Assembly (NCBI GenBank): GCA_016748015.1
Contig: JAAOMT010000760.1
Location: 540,039-604,038 of the forward strand
DNA length: 64,000 bases
Direction of reading: 5' to 3'
DNA from: Geosiphon pyriformis uo1
Taxonomy: Eukaryota > Fungi > Glomeromycota
Within the stretch, counting starts at the first letter, position 1; each line of letters starts with the position of its first letter. Position numbers and translations under genes: made by a program. Shown here in pieces: positions 2,594 to 43,368 of this stretch. The notes beneath the pieces were generated by a model. That model was not told where the DNA came from, did not search any database, and saw nothing but the letters and a program-made list of their open reading frames with translations.

Positions 2594-3504
2594 AAAATTC
2601 TATTAATTGTTATAATAACACTTTGCATTCAATACTGTACATAGAAAATTGGTTTTAGAGAATACATATTGTAATTGTAAATTCCAAGCTTTTACATAAT
2701 GACTGGTTTTTGTAATTTTTTATTAGGAATTTTGAATCCAGAATATGATAAAAGAAGTATTTCAATATATAAGGATAGGTTTAAGAGGAGTGTAACGCAG
2801 AAAGATTTTTCCGATAACCCGAATTCATTGAGATTTTAGTTGAGGAACCTGAATTGAGCTACACTAGCCACTAGTTTTGTGAAAAAAAATTTTGGCTTTA
2901 TAGGAAAATGTTCCTTTTGTATTATAAAAGTAATCCAAAATAAGATGGGTGTTTTTTGATACAATAAATTCCCATATAGCGTGATTTCAAAGTTTCCACC
3001 CACATAATGCATAGCGATTTTACTGAATAGTCATGATAAGGGAAAAATTGAGAAAGAAAATATCGTGATGAAAGATATACTCATTCCTAATTTTTTTGTC
3101 GTCTCCTATCGACACTTGACCTAAGCCAGAAAAATTGCCGTATAGTCAGCTAAACCTGAAACAAAGAGACAAATTGGCTTAAATGATCTCAAACTGATCT
3201 GCCTAACCTCGAACAAATTACCCCACATTTTTAAATCTTTGGATTTTTACTCTCTTTTCCTTTTTTTAATCCAAACAATATTAAGCAAAAATTCTCATTT
3301 TTATCATGAGCTTGATTAAACCTTCATCTTATCCGAGATTTTTCAGAGTGGGCACAAGTTATCTGGAATAAAAACATGAAAATTAAGATTTTTGGGCTTT
3401 GCTTGTTAGTTATATTACTCGAGGACATATTTATTGAATATTACCAGAGAATTTTATTGAGAGTAAACAGAAAAATTTTGATGTATCCAGGAGACATTGA
3501 ATTT

Positions 3505-5406: not shown

Positions 5407-5734
5407 TATATTTAATTATTAAGAAGGGATAATCAAGAATTTATCGCAGATTTTTAAAGAAAAGGACTTATAAATTATTCGATCTATTTATATATCCACA
5501 TTTTTCTTTTACATTTATTTGACTGGAAGAAGCTACTCCTCAGATTTTTAATAGAAAACCCAATATTAAAGTTCAAGATCCCAAGATAACTAACGAAGAA
5601 CCGACTACATTGATCATTCTATTGATCAATGGCCAGCATCAACGCCTAAATCGGATTATAAAACATAATCAACATGTGACAATTAACCAACTGCAGATAT
5701 CTTTTTTCTGCTTCAAAAATGCTGATCTTTTAGT

Positions 5735-6430
5735 ACAAAAAGAGGACAAAGACAACTTCTCGACATATGAACTCGTCTGCCTTTGATTTCCTCCAATACA
5801 TCTCCCTCCATTCTGCAAGATTCGTGGTTCTCTTCGACGATGCAACTTCTGACGGGCACAAACTCTTCCAGGATATTCTTGCTGTCAAAACAGTCTTCAT
5901 CTGCCGCATGCAGGAAAGGAGAGCTTCTCGCTACTGAAGAGAACGCAGAAACAAAAAATTGCAAGGGAAGACAACAGCTGCCTGTGGCAAACGCCAGAAG
6001 ATGGAAGGCATCATCAACCGCACGTCACTGGTCAAGATGCATCCCAACCACCCTCTGAAGCAGCTATTGAAGAGATGGATGGGCTCGGTGAGATTTGCCT
6101 TTAATATGTAGTGGGATCGAGCAAAAGGCGTAGCATCATTATGAAACAAGATGGTAGCACGGAAAAGGATGGTTAAAACTTATGGCGTTTTAACAAAAAC
6201 ATCTTCTTTTGGGCTATCTGGGGTGAAAAAAAGTTCGCAGGGCCATGGTCCGTTTTGGCATGCTCTTAAGAGGTTGCTTAGGGTCAGCTCTTCCACATCA
6301 CAGACGAAACGATTGATCAAGCATTGGTTGCGCAAAAGGAAGATATTAAATGTAATGCATAGCGACAACAAAGTGTATCAACAGATGATCTTTCTTTTCA
6401 ACCTCATACCATAAAAATTTGTACTCGAAT
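5735..6430 (+). mobile_element. IS607-like element relic A: TnpA C-terminus plus Fanzor2/TnpB N-terminal part, 3'-truncated
   Basis: The frame from 5767 reads AFDFLQYISLHSARFVVLFDDATSDGHKLFQDILAVKTVFICRMQERRASRY*, resembling the IS607 TnpA end (EL.EDILAI.TVF.CR..GRR). It continues as RTSLVKMHPNHPLKQLLKRWMGSVRFAFN (TnpB/Fanzor N-terminal motif), and later ITDETIDQALVAQKEDI...FQPHTIKICTR. Confidence 0.8.
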
Positions 6431-14309: not shown

Positions 14310-15670
14310 TGATGGTCTCTAACAGCTCCATCTTTCTTGCCAAATTATCACTGATGTTGCGGGGTGAATTAATTTCAAAAGATCCAGTTTTAAATCCTAT
14401 TGAATTCTCACATTGAGGAATGGGTACAGAAGCATGTCTAATTTTTAAATTTTATATATCACATTAATATATTTCCTTTTTAATTTAGCAGGTTGTGGTT
14501 GCCTAACTCTGTTTGCATGTACACATTCTTTATCTCAATAGCATAAAAATCATCATAATTTTACTTAGAAAATAATACATCAATTTTTATTACTGCAGTT
14601 CAAGAATTGCCCAAAAATATTTTTTCAATTAATAGTGTTTTTATTCAAAGATAATACTTAGTAAGAAATTGACAAAGATGAAATAATTGAAAACAACAAG
14701 AACAAGAAAAAAAAGCCAGAAAAATTTTAATATTTGTAAGAAAAAAAGAGTAAAAAATTTACCAAGAAGTATTAAAAGCCAAATGCAATACAAAAAATAA
14801 TTATGAAACAATAATTGGGCTGTATTAAATAAATAATATTTTTTTAAATCTTTTGATATTATTATCATTATTATTACAGATTGGAATAAATGATAGCAAT
14901 TCAATTATAAAAAAGTACTGTGCAAAAAAACTATATAGCCAAAATTTAAAAAATTATCTATTTTTTCAGAATAAATACCAAAAAACAAAATAATTGGCTT
15001 AATAAAAGAGTGTTAAAACGTGTAATTATAAATTTATTTAAAATTTCTAACTTTTATAGTTGTTATTTATAAAAAACAAATTACTAATTTTTTTGTTCAA
15101 ATTTTTATATTTTTTTTATTAAGTAAAGTTCAATTTTATTATTAATATATATAAAATCTAAATTTGATTCAAAATTTGTTATTTATTTTTACTTTATAAA
15201 TATTTTTATTATTATATCTGTAATAAGATTGGTGTTAAAAATGCATTTTTTGATAATTTTATTCTCTGAACAGTTAAAAAATTTGCTAAAAACAAAGTTT
15301 TATGTAATGTGTTCAAACATAAATCCAAGATCATATTATTAAAAATCTTGTTGATAAATTTTACAGAAAAACTACATTTGGCTTGTCTGAAATTCTGATT
15401 TTATTATAATTTCTAAATTTAATAAAGATTAAATGAAAAATAACAAAACAGTGCAGAATATAATAATATAAACACATGTAAGTTTTAAACAAAAATTGAA
15501 GTTCAAACCTAAAGAGTTTAACAATCATGTTTTTTGGGTTATATACAGTTAATATGGAAAAAAAAGGTTTTTAAATGTAAACAATGCAATTATATATATA
15601 TATAAATATTAATAATACATGTGAAATATTTTTTCAAATATTATTTAATAGCTATTTACAATTTGAAAAT
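14310..15670 (+). mobile_element. IS607-like element relic B: intron-containing TnpA plus Fanzor2, degraded with internal deletions
   Basis: TnpA motifs: QIITDVAG*INFKRSSFK (14341), intron about 14432-14491, VVVA*LC, QELPKNIFSINSVF (14601). Fanzor motifs: RSIK..KQ*LGC, intron about 14829-14879, IKNLVDKFYRKTT/WLV*NSDFIIISKFN, NKTVQNIII*THVSFKQKLK, VFKCKQCN, NINNTCEIFFQILFNSYLQFE. Confidence 0.85.
14320..14650 (+). pseudogene. tnpA: IS607 serine recombinase TnpA relic (copy B)
   Basis: Matches the D(I/V)xSGxNFKRxG motif, the VVVAHRDRLC motif (partly deleted) and the C-terminal ELAEDILSINTVF motif after allowing mostly C>T/G>A changes. Confidence 0.8.
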
Positions 15671-15999
15671 ATATTATATTTATTTATTTCCAAAAATGAA
15701 TTAACTGCTTAAAATAAAAGCTAATAAATTTTTTATGTTTCATCAGAACCAAATACAAAGTATGGGTTATTGTTGGTTTCTTTGATAAAAATACTCAAAA
15801 GGATATAATATATTGAATAATATTGGCAAATCATATTGGAAAAGCAAATTCATATTTGCTACTGGTAACTAGGAGACAGCTTCAAAAGCCAGAGTTAAAA
15901 AAATACCTGATGTTATACTATATAAGAAGTTTAATCTTTAAATTTTCAAAGCTTGGAAGAATAAAAAATTAAATCTTAACTCTGCATTATGTTATTAGA

Positions 16000-16200
16000 T
16001 AATGCTGAAGAGAGACAGGATTGACGGGCATTATGAACATTCCTCTCTACAAAAATGCTTTGGTTCTGGTTGGACACGGAAAATTATACATATCAACAAC
16101 GGGCCTGTGAGTTTGCCAGGCTTTGCTGGATGATTGGACATATGATGATTTAGGTGGCTATTAATGGTCAATGTTGTCTATCTGAGTTCGACTCAAGCGA
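16000..16200 (+). mobile_element. Fanzor2 3'-end fragment C with putative omega-RNA scaffold
   Basis: Degraded AEE...KCFGSGW...NNG..(R)ALLD. Positions 16119-16132 are identical to 42823-42836, and 16155-16186 match 42874-42905 at 28/32. Confidence 0.7.
16119..16197 (+). ncRNA. Putative Fanzor omega-RNA scaffold (degraded copy)
   Basis: Homologous to the 42.8-kb copy. GGATG..TATCT long-range stem remnant, TGGCTA-TTAA-TGGTCA hairpin and terminal TGAGT-TCG-ACTCA hairpin. Confidence 0.5.
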
Positions 16201-17179
16201 TCCGTTCCTAGCAAATCCCTTTATTTTCTCTAGTATGTTAGTTTATCCAATTCCTTTGAGGAAGCAAATTCTAAATTGGATATTGATTTTATGATTTCTC
16301 TTCCATTGAAATTTCGATTCATTAAATATCAGTACACAAGATAAGGTTCCGACTAATAACTCAGATAATTAATTATCTCTCAGCATTCAATTAAAATTTC
16401 TATTCCAGAATTAAATACAATTTAAAGTATCAGGGGGAAGGGACAATTGATTTTGACTAATCCACAATTTTGTAAAAAGTGCAAGAGAAACATTTGAAAA
16501 TATCGATTCAAATTTTTACTGCAATAAAAACTTTGGTAAAAAGTTCGGAGATAATTGATCAAATAATTGTTTCTCGCTTCAAAATTTGAATTCCAAACCA
16601 AATCATCATATTTCGTTCAAATTTGAAATTTTCAGGCTATCATTATTTCACAGCCGAACCTCAGAACTTTGTAAAATAAAAAATTATTAATTTAGAAAAA
16701 TGGGAATTTGTCAAGATCATCACATTTCTTTATTAAAAAATGTAAAACTCCATGCCAAACGTGTCCAAGATGAATTAGATAAAAATTGGGTTGATAAATT
16801 CTTTTAAATATATGATCAAAGCGCTTTATTAGGAGCGTCTTTGGGCTTACCCTTCCATAAAAAATTCACTCTTACGTTTTTAGGACGAACTGAATAGAAA
16901 AGGAAGTGAAATTCATTAAATTTTTTGGGCTCCTGACGGTTCAATGAGATGTTGAAAATGTAATATTAAATTTTTCTAACTATATAAACGAGAATGAACT
17001 ATTAAAGCAAAAAAATTCGGATAAACTAAGTCAGTTAAAGGGGAATTAGGTAAGCTTGTAAAAGCTGGGAAATTATAATAATGTGCTCGATTTCTTCCTG
17101 TGGAAAACAATCTATTAAAATATTTAATTATTATAAATCGTTAAGAGGGAAAGAAGTTGCTAAACAACAGGGTGAAGTT

Positions 17180-36891: not shown

Positions 36892-39800
36892 TTGATTTCA
36901 AGAAAAAAATCTGATATTTACAAACAGATTCTAAAAGTTTATTCCCAATAACAGACTTTTCAATATAAATTTATTTCAATATTATTTAGGTTGGTTCAAT
37001 TTGATATTATATATTAGCTACTTGTAATTAGTCATATTAATCATTTTAAAAAGTCTTATTCATTTGTTCATTTGATTCTTAATTCATTTTAATTTTTATA
37101 TTTTTTATCTTATTAACCCAATATAGATATGTGAATTTTTATCGTTTTTAATTTCATATTTAGAGCTTTTTTTATTAAGATATATAATAAATAAATTTTT
37201 TTAATACTTTTATTATTAAAATATATGAATATTTAATTTGAATATGAGAATTCTTTAAATTACATACTATTTTATTATTATTTGCCAATTTTGGAGTTTT
37301 AACAAATAAATATGGTTTTGTTTTTTCAAAATGGATATTTATATTATTTATTATTGAGATGAATTTATTTCAAAAGTCAAAAATTATTTAATATAAGAAA
37401 TAATGAAGGGTTTAAAATGTTTCTCATAATATGTTAATATAAATTTAATTATCAATATTTTTTTATTTTGAGAACCTAATTAACATAAATATATCTATGA
37501 ATTTTAAGTTTCTTTGAAATATATTTGCATTAAATTTTATTTTTTTAATATCAAAGAAATAAATAACGAAAAAAAATTTGCTTATAATTAAAATTAAAAA
37601 TGTTAAATATGTAATACTATTTATAATGAAGAAAGAGCAAATGAAAAAATTAGAGAGGGTACTCGGAAAACGTGCGTTCAATTTTCTATCAGTGGATTGA
37701 GTCTATACTTAAAAAAGACACATTTTATGTATATGCCTTTTTGCTGTAGTTTATTATACCCAAGCTATAAATTTTTTTAATTAAAAAAGGCATCATGGTC
37801 TCTCTCTGCGAAAAAAGATTGCTATCACAGCTTAATTAGGAAGCCTGTTTCCCCAATTAAAACATCTTGATAGAAATGTACACAATTTATCAAGTGATAA
37901 TTGACCGTGAAAATTCACAAAGAACTTTCCTCCAACGATGGTTAATATGCTTTTTAAAGTTCCTTGGTGGCAATAGAAAATCAAATTTTTAAAGTCGATT
38001 GAAAGTTTTTTTTGGAATAAAAATTTCTAGAAAGTTTGCGTCATCAATTTTAAGAACATTCTTACATTTATTTGCACTAAGAGTAAATAAACTATTCCCA
38101 AAAGGTATGGCGTGAATAAATTAATTTATTTAGTCAATTGAATCTTTTGTTTTAGGTAATTTGCGTAAGAGGATAACAGGTTTAAAAATATAAGGAAAAT
38201 AACTTTTAATGGACAATGAAATAGGTCATCTGTAGTACAAATTCGGTGAGTCAATGAAAAATGGATTTGGAAAAATTGGTTAAATCCCGAAATACCACTA
38301 TTAAATCTCTGGCTGTGATTTGCGAAAATTATTAACTTGACGATTATATTTTGAATTTAAATGAATTTATTATTATTAATAATATTATTATATTATTATT
38401 TTCTTATGCATTTCATTCAAAAATAATTTTAAATTCCTTTCGACTATTAATGAACCTAAATTNNNNNNNNNNNNNNNNNNNNTTGATTTCAAGAAAAAAA
38501 TCTGATATTTACAAACAGATTCTAAAAGTTTATTCCCAATAACAGACTTTTCAATATAAATTTATTTCAATATTATTTAGGTTGGTTCAATTTGATATTA
38601 TATATTAGCTACTTGTAATTAGTCATATTAATCATTTTAAAAAGTCTTATTCATTTGTTCATTTGATTCTTAATTCATTTTAATTTTTATATTTTTTATC
38701 TTATTAACCCAATATAGATATGTGAATTTTTATCGTTTTTAATTTCATATTTAGAGCTTTTTTTATTAAGATATATAATAAATAAATTTTTTTAATACTT
38801 TTATTATTAAAATATATGAATATTTAATTTGAATATGAGAATTCTTTAAATTACATACTATTTTATTATTATTTGCCAATTTTGGAGTTTTAACAAATAA
38901 ATATGGTTTTGTTTTTTCAAAATGGATATTTATATTATTTATTATTGAGATGAATTTATTTCAAAAGTCAAAAATTATTTAATATAAGAAATAATGAAGG
39001 GTTTAAAATGTTTCTCATAATATGTTAATATAAATTTAATTATCAATATTTTTTTATTTTGAGAACCTAATTAACATAAATATATCTATGAATTTTAAGT
39101 TTCTTTGAAATATATTTGCATTAAATTTTATTTTTTTAATATCAAAGAAATAAATAACGAAAAAAAATTTGCTTATAATTAAAATTAAAAATGTTAAATA
39201 TGTAATACTATTTATAATGAAGAAAGAGCAAATGAAAAAATTAGAGAGGGTACTCGGAAAACGTGCGTTCAATTTTCTATCAGTGGATTGAGTCTATACT
39301 TAAAAAAGACACATTTTATGTATATGCCTTTTTGCTGTAGTTTATTATACCCAAGCTATAAATTTTTTTAATTAAAAAAGGCATCATGGTCTCTCTCTGC
39401 GAAAAAAGATTGCTATCACAGCTTAATTAGGAAGCCTGTTTCCCCAATTAAAACATCTTGATAGAAATGTACACAATTTATCAAGTGATAATTGACCGTG
39501 AAAATTCACAAAGAACTTTCCTCCAACGATGGTTAATATGCTTTTTAAAGTTCCTTGGTGGCAATAGAAAATCAAATTTTTAAAGTCGATTGAAAGTTTT
39601 TTTTGGAATAAAAATTTCTAGAAAGTTTGCGTCATCAATTTTAAGAACATTCTTACATTTATTTGCACTAAGAGTAAATAAACTATTCCCAAAAGGTATG
39701 GCGTGAATAAATTAATTTATTTAGTCAATTGAATCTTTTGTTTTAGGTAATTTGCGTAAGAGGATAACAGGTTTAAAAATATAAGGAAAATAACTTTTAA

Positions 39801-40053
39801 TGGACAATGAAATAGGTCATCTGTAGTACAAATTCGGTGAGTCAATGAAAAATGGATTTGGAAAAATTGGTTAAATCCCGAAATACCACTATTAAATCTC
39901 TGGCTGTGATTTGCGAAAATTATTAACTTGACGATTATATTTTGAATTTAAATGAATTTATTATTATTAATAATATTATTATATTATTATTTTCTTATGC
40001 ATTTCATTCAAAAATAATTTTAAATTCCTTTCGACTATTAATGAACCTAAATT
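36892..40053 (+). repeat. Apparently exact 1571-bp direct duplication (36892-38462 and 38483-40053) flanking a 20-N gap
   Basis: Offset of 1591 bp. Identical ORFs at 37463 and 39054. The copies abut the N run at 38463-38482. Confidence 0.95.
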
Positions 40054-40609
40054 TTTAATTTTTTAATGTTTTTTAGGAATACCATGCATTAAATTCTGAG
40101 TTGTGGTTTCGCATAAGTGATAAAATTTTTTTGCAAAATTAACACATGGCGAAACCTGTTTCATTTTGTCAAATAAAGCATTGGATCATTTTATTTTTGG
40201 GAGCCTGAATTGCCTGCAATACTGGAACGTGCTAAATAAATAAACAAACAAACTGGAGGTATCAAGTTTTAGTCGAATTCGAACTTTGTTTAAAAATGCT
40301 CGACCATTAGTTTCGCTCAACTTTTCGTAACAGCAAAACAAAATTTATGCGTTAAATAATATTGAATTTTTAGATAATTTGACACAATGAAGAATTTTTT
40401 ACAATTAAAATTTAAATGATCGTAAGTATTGAAACTGCTTTCTATTATGGTTGGGAATATTGGGTATTTTTTAAGAATAGATCAGAGCCCAGCAAATAAA
40501 TTGAAATTTACTATACTTTTAATGATGTCTTAGTATTTTTTTTAATTATTAATATCATTACAATTTGATCACCATTTCTGAACTCTTATGTATTTTATGA
40601 TTTTATTAC

Positions 40610-40975
40610 ATATTTTATGTCCTGTCTTTTCTTTTTAATAGAAGCAACATCAACAATTATACCTTTCTTACTTTATTTTTGCTGATGTTGCAGACAAGAC
40701 CCTACTAGAACAATCATGTCACAGCTTGGTTCAAGAGATGTGTTTTTCTTTTTTTACTTTTTATTGTTTGAAGATCAAAACTTATACTTATTATTTTGGT
40801 ATTTAGACTGTGATTGCTCACTAATACTAATTCTTTCACCATTGTCTCAACAACACAAAAATCATCATAATAGACACATAAAATTACTCATTGTTCAATT
40901 TCACAGCCAACAATTTGGTTAAAAATATTATTACAATCAATACAGACTTTAATTATTAACAGCAAAAAAGAACAA
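40610..40975 (+). pseudogene. tnpA: IS607 serine recombinase TnpA relic (copy D)
   Basis: tatgtcctgtcttttct (YARVSS relic), KQ..QQLYLSYFIFADVA..KTLLEQSCHSLVQE, intron 40738-40806, TVIAH*Y* (HRDR), NNLVKNIITINTDFNY*QQKR (DLVEDIIAINTVFNCRQQGR). Confidence 0.75.
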
Positions 40976-41040
40976 AAAGTTCAATATTAAAGTGAGTTTT
41001 TTTTTTAATTCTGAAAAAGTAAAAGATAGAAAGAATAATA

Positions 41041-42641
41041 AGAAGTTTGAAGATACATGTGAATTTAAATGTGAACAAAAAACAATAATAAAGCAATAGT
41101 TGAATTGTGCCAGATAAGAAAAGATAAAAGTTTTAAATATGTTATATATATTGAAAATATTAACTTATGTTATTTTTGTTATTATAGAATTGTATATAAC
41201 ATAGTAGTAAAAAATTATGTTTTGAACAAGAAAAATAAAGGATTATAAACATCTTGATCTTAAATATTTTCAGAATTTACAAAAAAAATACATTACAATA
41301 ATGCAATCTTATATAAAAATAAAATCATAAAAGATACTATTCAAGTCTAAAAAGCTTGAACAAACTGTTTAATATTGTTTTTGGTTTTACTTATGAAAAC
41401 AATTATGGCAAACAATTACAATTTAAAAAGAAAACTGCAAAAATAATTTGCTATTTTTTAAACATAAACTTTATTTGCGGAAGCAATTGTTTAATAATCA
41501 ATTTAATCTTAAACTAAAAACTAAAGAAATGGCAAAATAAATAGCAAAATAACCATTAGTTTAGTTAATAACCACAAAAATTCAAAGAGTAACTTAATTC
41601 TTAATGTTAAAACTCTAAACAAAAAAAAATCACAGACAAAAAAAATGAAAAAAATAACAAATTAATCAAAAGTCTGGTTATTAACAACTATTACAATTAT
41701 TATAGTTTTAAAAACAAAAGCAAAAAAATTCAAAACCATTATTTTAAGAACAAAAAAATTATTCGCAATAAAAAAATGTTAATACACATTCTCCACTTTA
41801 TCTTAAATATCAAAAAATAATAATAACTAGTTTAATAAAAAAGAAGACACATTGTGACAACAAACTAGTATATAACTGGTTGCTTCAGTAGTGGATATTT
41901 ATACAAGTTTATAAAAAAAAAGGCTATCTCCCAATAATAATAATAAGAATCAAATGAAAATTTGCTTTCTAGATCTAAGTGTTTGTATCTTTCAAATCTG
42001 TAAGTTAATAACAGAAGTAAGATGTCAAAAACAAAATGTTAAAAATAAAACATTATGGTTAATTTATAATCTGTTTTTCTATTAATTAACAGGTATTTTC
42101 TAACACATAACTGTGGTGAAATTAGTGGCAATGATGTTCAAAAGCTTGTTCACATCTGACTTGCACCCAATTATCTAATCTCTTTTATAACCCAGGCTTC
42201 TGTGAAAAAGCATAACTTGATGCAATGTACATAGGCACGAATGTGCCAATGAATTTACAACCCTGTAAATGAAGTCCATAAGAAGACTACTCTATGGCTT
42301 GTGCAAACATTTGACATTATCATCATCCCACTCTTTAATGCAAGCGAGATAAGAAGAAAGACCCAAAAACGGAAAATTAATTTCAAGACAGTTCAAAAGA
42401 TAATGACATGAACACACTCAAGATTCAGGAAGAGGCTTTTATCAAAGGCCAAGAAATATGGAAAACAAGTGTGCACAGTCTCAAAAATGTACAAGCAAGA
42501 CATGCAGTCAATGTGGGTGCATCAATAACAAACTTGGAGGGAAGAAGTCTTTTCATTGCCATAAGTGCAACTTGAAATATTAACAGTGCATGCAGTATTT
42601 TTCTTCGAGCTCTATTGAATGGCTGCATAAAATTTGAATAG
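41041..42641 (+). pseudogene. Fanzor2 (eukaryotic TnpB) RNA-guided nuclease pseudogene with at least 2 introns
   Basis: RSLKIH..KQ*LNCAR|intron 41114-41187|IVYN; CDNKLVY; KICFLDLSVCIFQI (ICSLDPGVRTFQT, Asp at 41972)|intron about 42000-42092|YFLTHNCGEI; NEVHKKTTLWLVQTFDIIIIPLF; T*THSRFRKRLLSKA; VSKMY.SKTCSQCG..LGGKKSFHCHKC; INSACSIFLRALLNG; stop at 42639-42641. Confidence 0.93.
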
Positions 42642-42799
42642 TGGCTGAGTGAGACTCTGAATTCTGTTGTCTGTGAATGGTAGCATTTTTTTTTAAAAAA
42701 AAAGGAGACGAGATTTATTATAAAAAAAATATACAGCTGGAGCTGATAATAATGATAACAATGATGACGATAGCGAGAACTTAAAACATACAGCTGGAT

Positions 42800-42915
42800 G
42801 AGTGCCTGAAGGATTTCCTTCGGGCTTTGCTGGATGGATCTGTCCTTTGGGGCAGTTGAATGATAGGTTATGTTGGCTAGTAATAGTCAATGTTGTCCAT
42901 CCGAGGTATTCAGTT
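42800..42915 (+). ncRNA. Fanzor2 3'-end fragment E, putative omega-RNA scaffold
   Basis: Starts with SA*RI(F)LRALLDG (GARGIFLRALLDG). GGATGGA 42832-38 pairs with TCCATCC 42896-902 and encloses the hairpins CTGTCC/GGGCAG and ATGTTGGCTA-GTAA-TAGTCAATGT. Confidence 0.7.
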
Positions 42916-43368
42916 AGGCCTAAAACAAGTAGTTTAGCATCTTTAATTATTTTTTGGCAAACATTACTTGAAATTTGCAAACAGAGGAAATAATTCGCCT
43001 CGCGGTGCTTTTTTTATTACAATTAAGAAAATTATCTTTACTAATATTCCTTGTAATTCCATTATATCTTGGTTCTCAGAACAGAGTAAGTCTACCAGCG
43101 ATATGATTACTAATTCTTGACATGAGCGCAATCGCTAGTCAAGATGTCGTTTCATAAAATGTTACCCAAAAATGGCTTAGTTTACCTTTCTTGATGAATA
43201 ATAATGATCTATTCGATGAGATCCATCGATCACTCCCATTTTTCAACATGATCCGGAATTTCTCAAATTTTTATGAAAATTAACCCTATCCAAAATTTTT
43301 GAAGCATTCTGCCATATCATTCAAAGGTTACGTTTAAGATTTATCTCTCTGCACCTTTTTCAACTATA

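Follow-up and report, generated by a model that had tools for sequence, protein, structure and literature searches.

Probable relics of spliceosomal introns in both genes of dead IS607-Fanzor2 transposons of Geosiphon pyriformis

Two degenerate sequences lie in the window, the 64,000-nucleotide stretch of the Geosiphon pyriformis genome analysed here (contig JAAOMT010000760.1; G000:C634:540039-604038). These sequences, copy B and copy D, each represent, by their homologies, a dead and hypermutated member of one of two sister subfamilies of an IS607-type transposon, in which the gene of the serine recombinase TnpA is followed by that of a Fanzor2 nuclease. The segments that interrupt both genes would very probably be former spliceosomal introns, shared by the two subfamilies at two of the three sites. 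The initial annotation had outlined five such segments, 14432-14491 and 14829-14879 in copy B and 40738-40806, 41114-41187 and 42000-42092 in copy D, and all five limits proved exact; the flanking motifs that it quoted (TDVAG*INFKR, ADVA, V(V/I)AH and GCxR) are all present.

The assembly (128 Mb) is AT-rich and its host introns are short and of the GT-AG type; gene islands with a GC content of about 35% are interspersed with DNA of 10-25% GC. A DNA search of the genome with copy D located the D-type repeat, about 2.4 kb long, at 13 or more loci on 11 contigs with 65-80% identity, and the flanks differ in most of nine aligned copies, in keeping with dispersal. The best-kept D-type copies are L024 (contig C701, G000:C701:385500-387762, minus strand) and L025 (C404). 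The nearer relatives of copy B, as judged by DNA homology, are L038, L039 and L040 (G000:C387:37237-38547). L021, L022/L023, L012 and, in the window, copy A (about 5.56-6.11 kb) make up an intronless subfamily, C. The closest relative found is L050, a contig of a public sequencing run (Logan SRR29748405, 2252 nt) that holds an apparently intact 2.25-kb IS607-Fanzor2 element, with the protein P0001 and an intact TnpA of 248 residues (MerR and Resolvase domains). All searches used single exon pieces, and the local alignments were made on unspliced genomic DNA.

BLAST detected no DNA similarity between copies B and D, neither in the self-comparison of the window nor in the genome search with D. 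A profile of the D family, made from nine copies, was needed for this reason, and it matches B collinearly at 14316-14888 (E=1.7e-23), 15284-15488 (E=1.6e-9) and 16117-16206 (E=8e-5). Between positions 789 and 1864 of the profile B shows a gap, lacking about 1.07 kb with RuvC-I and intron 3; as the RuvC-I region is missing, the third intron cannot show in this copy. A search with the intron 3 region of L024 gave no match in B, and in the B-type copies retrieved RuvC-I is likewise lacking or lost. The parts of the two copies are the following.

14316 to 14431, plus strand: remnant of tnpA exon 1 of copy B (..ITDVAG*INFKRSSFKS.. IEFSH*GMGTE), with an internal 1-nt frameshift; DNA homology to L038, L039 and L040, and D-family profile.
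14432 to 14491, plus strand: intron 1 relic in tnpA of copy B, 60 nt, phase 0, reading ..acagaa, then GCATGT...GCAG, then gttgtggttgcc; absent from L021, L023, L050 and the IS607 TnpA domains of PDB.
14492 to 14655, plus strand: remnant of tnpA exon 2 of copy B (VVVA*.. to ..INSVFIQR); tblastn with the tnpA read-through of L023 (14490-14651) and alignment of B, C and D types.
14725 to 14828, plus strand: remnant of Fanzor exon 1 of copy B (..KKIIMKQ*LGC..); blastn to L024 and L025 (E=8e-12 and 4e-10), tblastn at 14779-14829 (E=4.5e-4).
14829 to 14879, plus strand: intron 2 relic of copy B, 51 nt, phase 2, in the Arg codon of GCxR before xxYN, ATAAAT..ACAG; the position is homologous to that of D-family intron 2.
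14880 to 15283, plus strand: start of Fanzor exon 2 of copy B, then AT-rich unalignable DNA in place of about 1.07 kb of family sequence (profile gap).
15284 to 15667, plus strand: C-terminal Fanzor remnant of copy B, ending in ..FE-like and a stop; nhmmer at 15284-15488 (E=1.6e-9), blastn of 15594-15667 to the 3' end of the L025 Fanzor gene.
15668 to 16206, plus strand: 3' non-coding region and right end of copy B; B-family DNA homology at 15716-16115, D-family profile at 16117-16206.
40517 to 40737, plus strand: left end and truncated tnpA exon 1 of copy D (YVLSFLF from YARVSS; ADVA, then KTLLEQSCHSLVQE), without helix-turn-helix (HTH) domain and with a 27-nt deletion of the SGINFKR segment; family alignments.
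40738 to 40806, plus strand: intron 1 relic in tnpA of copy D, 69 nt, phase 0, reading caagag, then ATGTGT...TTAG, then actgtgattgctcac; L024 (GTGTGT) and L027 (GTATGT) align in the same column, and it is absent from subfamily C and L050.
40807 to 40960, plus strand: remnant of tnpA exon 2 of copy D (VIAH, then TAA TAC TAA from Arg/Asp/Arg-type codons, ..NLVKNIITINT..); alignments.
40975 to 41113, plus strand: remnant of Fanzor exon 1 of copy D; the exon of L024 has a PF12323 match at its end (25.5 bits).
41114 to 41187, plus strand: intron 2 relic of copy D, 74 nt, phase 2, in the Arg codon of GCAR before VxYN, reading tgtgccag, then ATAAGA...ATAG, then a, after TGTGCCAG; L024 and L030 keep GTAAAA.
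41188 to 41999, plus strand: Fanzor exon 2 of copy D (WED/REC region to RuvC-I, LDPGV..), with many stops and frameshifts and 1 nt lost just 5' of intron 3; tblastn at 41189-41502 with pieces of L024.
42000 to 42092, plus strand: intron 3 relic of copy D, 93 nt, phase 2, in a Trp codon, GTAAGT..ACAG; tblastn gap of 30-31 residues in L024, L025 and L026, contiguous in L023 and P0001.
42093 to 42641, plus strand: Fanzor exon 3 of copy D (RuvC-II, TNB zinc ribbon CSQCG..CHKC, RuvC-III, stop); tblastn E=1e-36 and 4e-19.
42642 to 42930, plus strand: conserved 3' non-coding region and right end of copy D, a guide-RNA candidate; family alignment columns 3000-3345.

The three inserts have canonical ends in the least-mutated copies. 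At intron 1 the donor is GTGTGT in L024, GTATGT in L027 and in the B-type copy L040, ATGTGT in D, L025 and L028, GCATGT in B and TTATTT in L039. The acceptors are TTTAG in the D family (TTTAA in L028) and ACAG, GTAG, GCAG or TAAG in the B type, and the lengths are 69-70 nt and 53-60 nt, respectively. In copy B the relic directly precedes the codons GTT GTG GTT GCC (VVVA), and its sister L040 keeps GTATGT..GTAG. Intron 2 begins with GTAAAA in L024 and L030, with ATAAAA or ATAAGA elsewhere and with ATAAAT in B; its acceptor is TATAG, or TATAA in the most mutated copies, and it measures 70-75 nt (51 nt in B). In B this intron follows ..GGGCTGTATTAA and reads ..tgtattaa, ATAAAT...ACAG and a, and the junction of TGTATTAA with ATAAAT is obtainable from that of TGTGCCAG with GTAAA by C>T and G>A changes alone. 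At intron 3, 90-93 nt long, the donors are GTAAGT in L024 and L026, ATAAGT in L025 and L028, and also ATAAAT and ATAGGT, with AATAG or AACAG as acceptor; copy D keeps GTAAGT, minus one exon base.

Within the D family all the substitutions away from GT or AG are G>A, and L025 and L031 carry small deletions at the intron 2 donor. The initial annotation, which had taken the mutated donors as GT sites changed by G>A and had called for an alignment of the copies around GT..AG ends, is borne out on this point by the less-mutated relatives, which keep GT. The donor GCATGT of copy B, which it had read as either GC-type or mutated, is more simply a T>C derivative of the GTATGT kept by L040 than a GC-type donor. 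Intron 1 is in phase 0, and introns 2 and 3 are in phase 2, within an Arg codon (AG then G or A) and a Trp codon (TG then G). Excision keeps the reading frame and restores VxE + VVVAH, GCAR + VxYN and TFQTW + YSPT. For comparison, an M50 peptidase-like host gene of the window (HEAGH, minus strand, 11.8-13.9 kb) shows, when read by eye, intron-like gaps of about 70-80 nt with the donors GTAAGA, GTACGT, GTAAGG and GTGAGT and YAG acceptors; the relics measure 51-93 nt. Intron 1 starts similarly in the B type and the D type, with gtRtgttt.. and then a T-run, and introns 1 and 2 occupy identical codon positions. For these reasons both introns would predate the split of B and D.

The segments could instead be ordinary insertions, small inserts or products of slippage in AT-rich DNA, which accumulated in dead pseudogenes and were never spliced, the GT..AG ends being coincidental. 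All copies are in fact pseudogenes within AT-rich, heavily mutated DNA in which indels are common, the D-type tnpA contains two other family-wide 27-nt indels, and support for splicing from RNA is absent, the sequencing-run search having listed no RNA run. However, in L024 all three inserts start with GT and end with AG, with extended canonical donors and YAG acceptors, and the chance of obtaining three GT..AG inserts is about 1e-5 (our own arithmetic, from the composition of L024 and with three registers allowed per end). Moreover, the inserts have the size of host introns, keep the frame and restore conserved residues when removed, and introns 1 and 2 are common to two otherwise very different subfamilies. 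Coincidental insertion is hence considered improbable.

Comparison with intronless relatives, also proposed in the initial annotation, identifies the segments as clean insertions with respect to subfamily C, L050 and the Pfam and PDB homologues. Subfamily C is uninterrupted at site 1 (..GMVSE IVVT.. and ..GRVSE IVAT..), at site 2 (..RWMGSVRFAFN.. in copy A, and ..RWMGLARFAIN..) and at site 3 (..TFYMYSPTEG..). The IS607 TnpA catalytic domains 3LHK and 3LHF of PDB are contiguous across site 1, and copy A, L012, L050, P0009-P0013 and a phage TnpB are so at site 2. A scan of viral contigs with the C-terminal Fanzor exon returned phage loci of IS200/605-type TnpB only, with GGCR and LVYN contiguous, and a large protein search returned relatives of 50-63% identity that are contiguous at sites 2 and 3, for instance AIDPGVRTFATWYSPTEGCGKIG in P0001. 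The element of L050 is contiguous at all sites (LVKE + IVVTQRDRLCRF, QWMGCAR + LSYN and TFATW + YSPTEG). In tblastn the alignments of its proteins to the genomic DNA of L024, L025 and L026 break for 30-31 residues, exactly at the junction of TF.TW with YSPT (E=4.5e-65), and the alignment to L039 has a gap of 19 residues that lies at most a few residues away from site 1.

L050 resembles the Geosiphon families in gene order and in the motifs ASKALGVSSSTLRRW, YIYARVSS, DIGSGINFKR, IVVTQRDRLCRF, QWMGCAR and DPGVRTFATWYSPTEG, and its Fanzor is 63% identical to the C-terminal exon of L024. It differs in having open reading frames, none of the three introns, and a tnpA gene that overlaps the Fanzor frame. 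That it could be the unmutated form of these families was ruled out, the DNA likeness being limited to short pieces of 67-76% identity with subfamily C. The introns might nevertheless be real and have disappeared from subfamily C and L050, for example by gene conversion or by way of a cDNA intermediate, or the B/D lineage might have arrived already intron-bearing from another eukaryote. L050 could in principle be a transcript contig. Yet the IS607 TnpA and TnpB homologues of bacteria, archaea and viruses have no introns and read straight across the sites, and the low DNA identity of L050, in short pieces, means that it is not a transcript of these families. Loss or transfer is accordingly thought unlikely. 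Since the bacterial, archaeal and viral homologues examined lack introns at these sites, absence is taken as ancestral, and the simplest reading of the pattern would be that the ancestor of B and D gained the introns once.

The identity of the first gene is clearest in subfamily C, where PF00239 scores 40.2 bits on L021 and 31.8 on L022/L023 (cut-off 23.3) and the IS607-type domains 3LHK, 3LHF, 3ILX and 6DGC of PDB match. For B and D the assignment runs through a chain, from B and D to L039 by DNA and from L039 to an intact TnpA by protein, the B-type copy L039 matching the latter at residues 26-188 (E=9.6e-19). Upstream of the catalytic motif L040, also of B type, reads ASKQLGVSSRTLVRW, which aligns with the HTH of L050; in Pfam this piece stays below cut-off, with E=0.0066 for MerR, 0.071 for MerR_1 and 0.11 for HTH_17. 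Copy B shows no detectable HTH, and the D family lacks it. No Pfam family was found for the B-type tnpA exon pieces of L038 and L039 or for L023:1687-1866, and WRKY matches of an N-terminal piece, L024:3702-3830, were discarded as spurious.

In each of the three subfamilies tnpA is accompanied by the second gene. The Fanzor ATG of D-family copies lies about 15 nt past the tnpA stop, on the same strand, and the order is alike in subfamily C and L050. PF07282 (TNB zinc ribbon) scores 72.8 bits on a piece of L024. PF12323 (HTH_OrfB_IS605) exceeds its cut-off of 21 over positions 3-28 of its 47, stopping in L024 exactly at GCAR; positions 29-47 were not recovered from the exon 3' of intron 2. The nuclease of L024 shows CSQC..CHGC, DRDVNGA and, at RuvC-I, LDPGV; a DPG signature of Fanzors is described in 10.1101/2023.08.09.552727. 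Its best solved relative is 9B0L, the mimivirus L79 protein, a Fanzor2 (E=4.7e-9). At its start the Fanzor of L026 (G000:C701:312500-317000) reads MSNKKRKVG.., the core of an SV40-like nuclear localisation signal (NLS). Other copies have C or H in place of the R of KKRKV, as decay of a CGC codon would give, and subfamily C has a KRKGK..RPKRRKR stretch at the same place.

All these copies have been altered by one prevailing type of mutation. L024 and L028 differ by 612 GC>AT changes, 35 AT>GC changes and 78 transversions. In the D-family alignment (L024-L031 and D) a fraction of 0.57-0.67 of C sites is changed at CA, CC, CG and CT alike, with no clear dinucleotide preference, unlike the CpA-biased spectrum of classical repeat-induced point mutation. 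When GC>AT changes are left aside, L024 and L028 differ by about 5% (113/2100 sites), which suggests one burst rather than a long radiation of the D type. Apart from these changes, the D-type tnpA has structural defects. Its catalytic-serine motif lies about 60-80 nt from the left end, so near that the D type must be without the HTH, and two 27-nt in-frame deletions removed the SGINFKR segment and a segment after LCR. The arginine positions of HRDRLCR read TGA TAC TGA in L024-L027 and TAA TAC TAA in D; one of these arginines is CAA in the B type and TGA in the D type, each a single GC>AT step from CGA. A frameshift in D-type tnpA exon 2 was considered and rejected, the exon of L025 being one frame with three GC>AT-type stops and a 27-nt in-frame deletion. 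Because the crippled tnpA is common to the D copies, they are evidence for mobilisation in trans and not for a spliced transposase of their own.

The homology of the copies, the positions and boundaries of the inserts and their distribution among the subfamilies are observed; that the introns once underwent splicing, and that TnpA worked inside the nucleus, is inferred from these relics. The common ancestor of B and D would have gained host-type spliceosomal introns before the subfamilies split. Intron 1 would have entered the catalytic domain of tnpA in phase 0, between ..V(Q/S/T)E and VVVAH(R)DRLCR, and intron 2 the Fanzor gene in phase 2, in the Arg codon of GCAR + VxYN. Intron 3, seen in the D lineage only, would have entered in phase 2 a Trp codon after RuvC-I (LDPGVRTFQT). 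With introns in both genes, expression of either would have needed nuclear splicing. The B type may have kept a full TnpA (MerR-like HTH and catalytic domain), and the D type, without HTH and with internal deletions, would be a non-autonomous derivative moved in trans by the B-type or another TnpA. Genome-wide GC-to-AT mutation would later have destroyed all copies, turning most GT donors into AT. Taken as a whole, with dead sister subfamilies, host-type introns gained by a common ancestor and a D type moved in trans, this history is judged the best explanation and a probable one. The stronger proposition, that an IS607 tnpA carrying a spliceosomal intron worked from the fungal nucleus, with B-type elements expressing spliced TnpA and Fanzor2 and mobilising the D types, and with subfamily C as the pre-intron state, is in our estimate evenly balanced.

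Several observations weigh against this history. The genome yielded no intact copy whose reading frames are open, and the run search, made with L024:1900-4400, listed no RNA run and so offers no spliced read. YTRAY-like motifs 20-30 nt 5' of the acceptors are loosely recognisable, by eye only. The donors of B (GCATGT) and L039 (TTATTT) are not GT, and for the B type intron 2 is known from copy B alone. The tnpA remnants of B and D gave no significant direct protein match. The wider claims of the initial annotation have to be trimmed: the D subfamily, source of most of the copies, spread with its tnpA already crippled, and only four B-type copies keep tnpA. It had placed the gain of the introns before the radiation of the family, which holds for introns 1 and 2 with respect to the B/D split; intron 3 is seen in the D lineage only. 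It had envisaged a transposase spliced and transposing in the nucleus for a long time; the relics of introns in tnpA speak for such a gene, and the long duration is not borne out, the divergence of about 5% outside GC>AT changes looking like one burst. Of the fully eukaryotised IS607 that it described, the introns in both genes are retained; a long-lived and self-sufficient element is only partly supported, given the crippled D-type tnpA and the small number of B-type copies with the gene.

To our knowledge, IS607 is the one bacterial insertion-sequence family recurrent in eukaryotes and their giant viruses. The known elements ACa-1/-2 and ISvMimi share with those described here a serine recombinase gene, tnpA, upstream of a TnpB/Fanzor2 gene of the same orientation, a putative MerR-like HTH at the N-terminus of TnpA (here in the B type), a compact length of about 2.3-2.4 kb and a conserved 3' non-coding end, and mimivirus L79 is the best solved relative of the nuclease. 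In contrast to them, the present elements form multi-copy families across a fungal nuclear genome, have introns in both genes and are all dead. Fanzor2 within IS607 elements with TnpA is described for Acanthamoeba (ACa-1/-2) and giant viruses (ISvMimi) by Bao & Jurka 2013 (PMC3627910), and Gilbert & Cordaux 2013 (PMC3673617) report IS607-like sequences in 14 eukaryotes with no evidence of transposition. The capture of introns and NLSs by Fanzor genes is already published: Jiang et al. 2023 (PMC10530073) give intron densities per Fanzor family, and the Fanzor2s tested there (ApmFNuc, MmFNuc, DpFNuc and BaFNuc) are all without introns. The likeness to such genes extends to host introns and an NLS, here KKRKV at the Fanzor start of L026; the difference is that the Fanzor2 gene lies here inside an IS607 element whose linked transposase gene also has an intron. 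As far as the available text of PMC3627910, PMC3673617, PMC10530073 and 10.1101/2023.08.09.552727 goes, an intron in an IS607 tnpA is not mentioned.

What is added here is the tnpA intron and the intronless sister subfamily. An intron in tnpA, present in two subfamilies that then spread to many loci, would imply that, during the active life of the element, its transposase came from a nuclear gene by way of splicing; if true, the genome would hold direct evidence that IS607 underwent sustained transposition in the nucleus of a eukaryote. Moreover, intronless and intron-bearing subfamilies side by side would give a before-and-after picture of a prokaryotic element adapting to a eukaryote, the signs of adaptation being the introns, the NLS-like KKRKV start of Fanzor2 and the non-autonomous derivatives. 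The practical value is limited, as every copy is dead, elements of this kind are known and reports of Fanzor genes with captured introns exist.

The member of the intronless subfamily that lies in the window itself is the following.

5560 to 6110, plus strand: copy A, 3' part of tnpA and Fanzor N-terminus; tblastn at 5779-5928 (E=8e-15), 5779-6009 and 5938-6108, and translation.

Its tnpA part reads ..AFDFLQY..VFICRMQERRASRY* and leads, without a change of frame, into the N-terminal part of Fanzor, where RWMGSVRFAFN is uninterrupted. In L050 (374-2188) and L023 (1448-2026) the Fanzor frame is open for about 150 codons further upstream, overlapping tnpA in another frame, and the gene models P0009 and P0011 have a similar N-terminal extension (..SAECKEGE..). 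The open frame could merely reflect the conservation of tnpA.

Short TACAAT/ATTGTA motifs are found at both ends of the elements, the ends being read roughly from the alignment, in flanks blurred by mutation. The B and D types have a 3' end in common (window 42800-42930 and 16117-16206, ..GTTGGCTAGTAATAGYCAATGTTGT..). In full copies ATTGTACGACTCAATCC comes next, and the left end again has TACAAT motifs. The shared 3' end and the TACAAT motifs are candidates for the end of a guide-RNA scaffold and for TnpA binding sites.

Upstream of the left end some sequence is common to L024, L027 and D. A tnpA fragment of subfamily-C type (ITQRDRLCQFAFDFFQY..) adjoins the D-type copy at L027:3369-3524 and may explain the upstream flank that L024 and L027 have in common. 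Another repeat abuts the left end of copy D (window 40400-40520) and is 96% identical to G000:C634:630209-630328 on the minus strand. Further upstream, window 36892-38462 and 38483-40053 are an exact duplication of 1571 nt around 20 N (38463-38482), most likely a scaffolding artefact and not a real tandem repeat.

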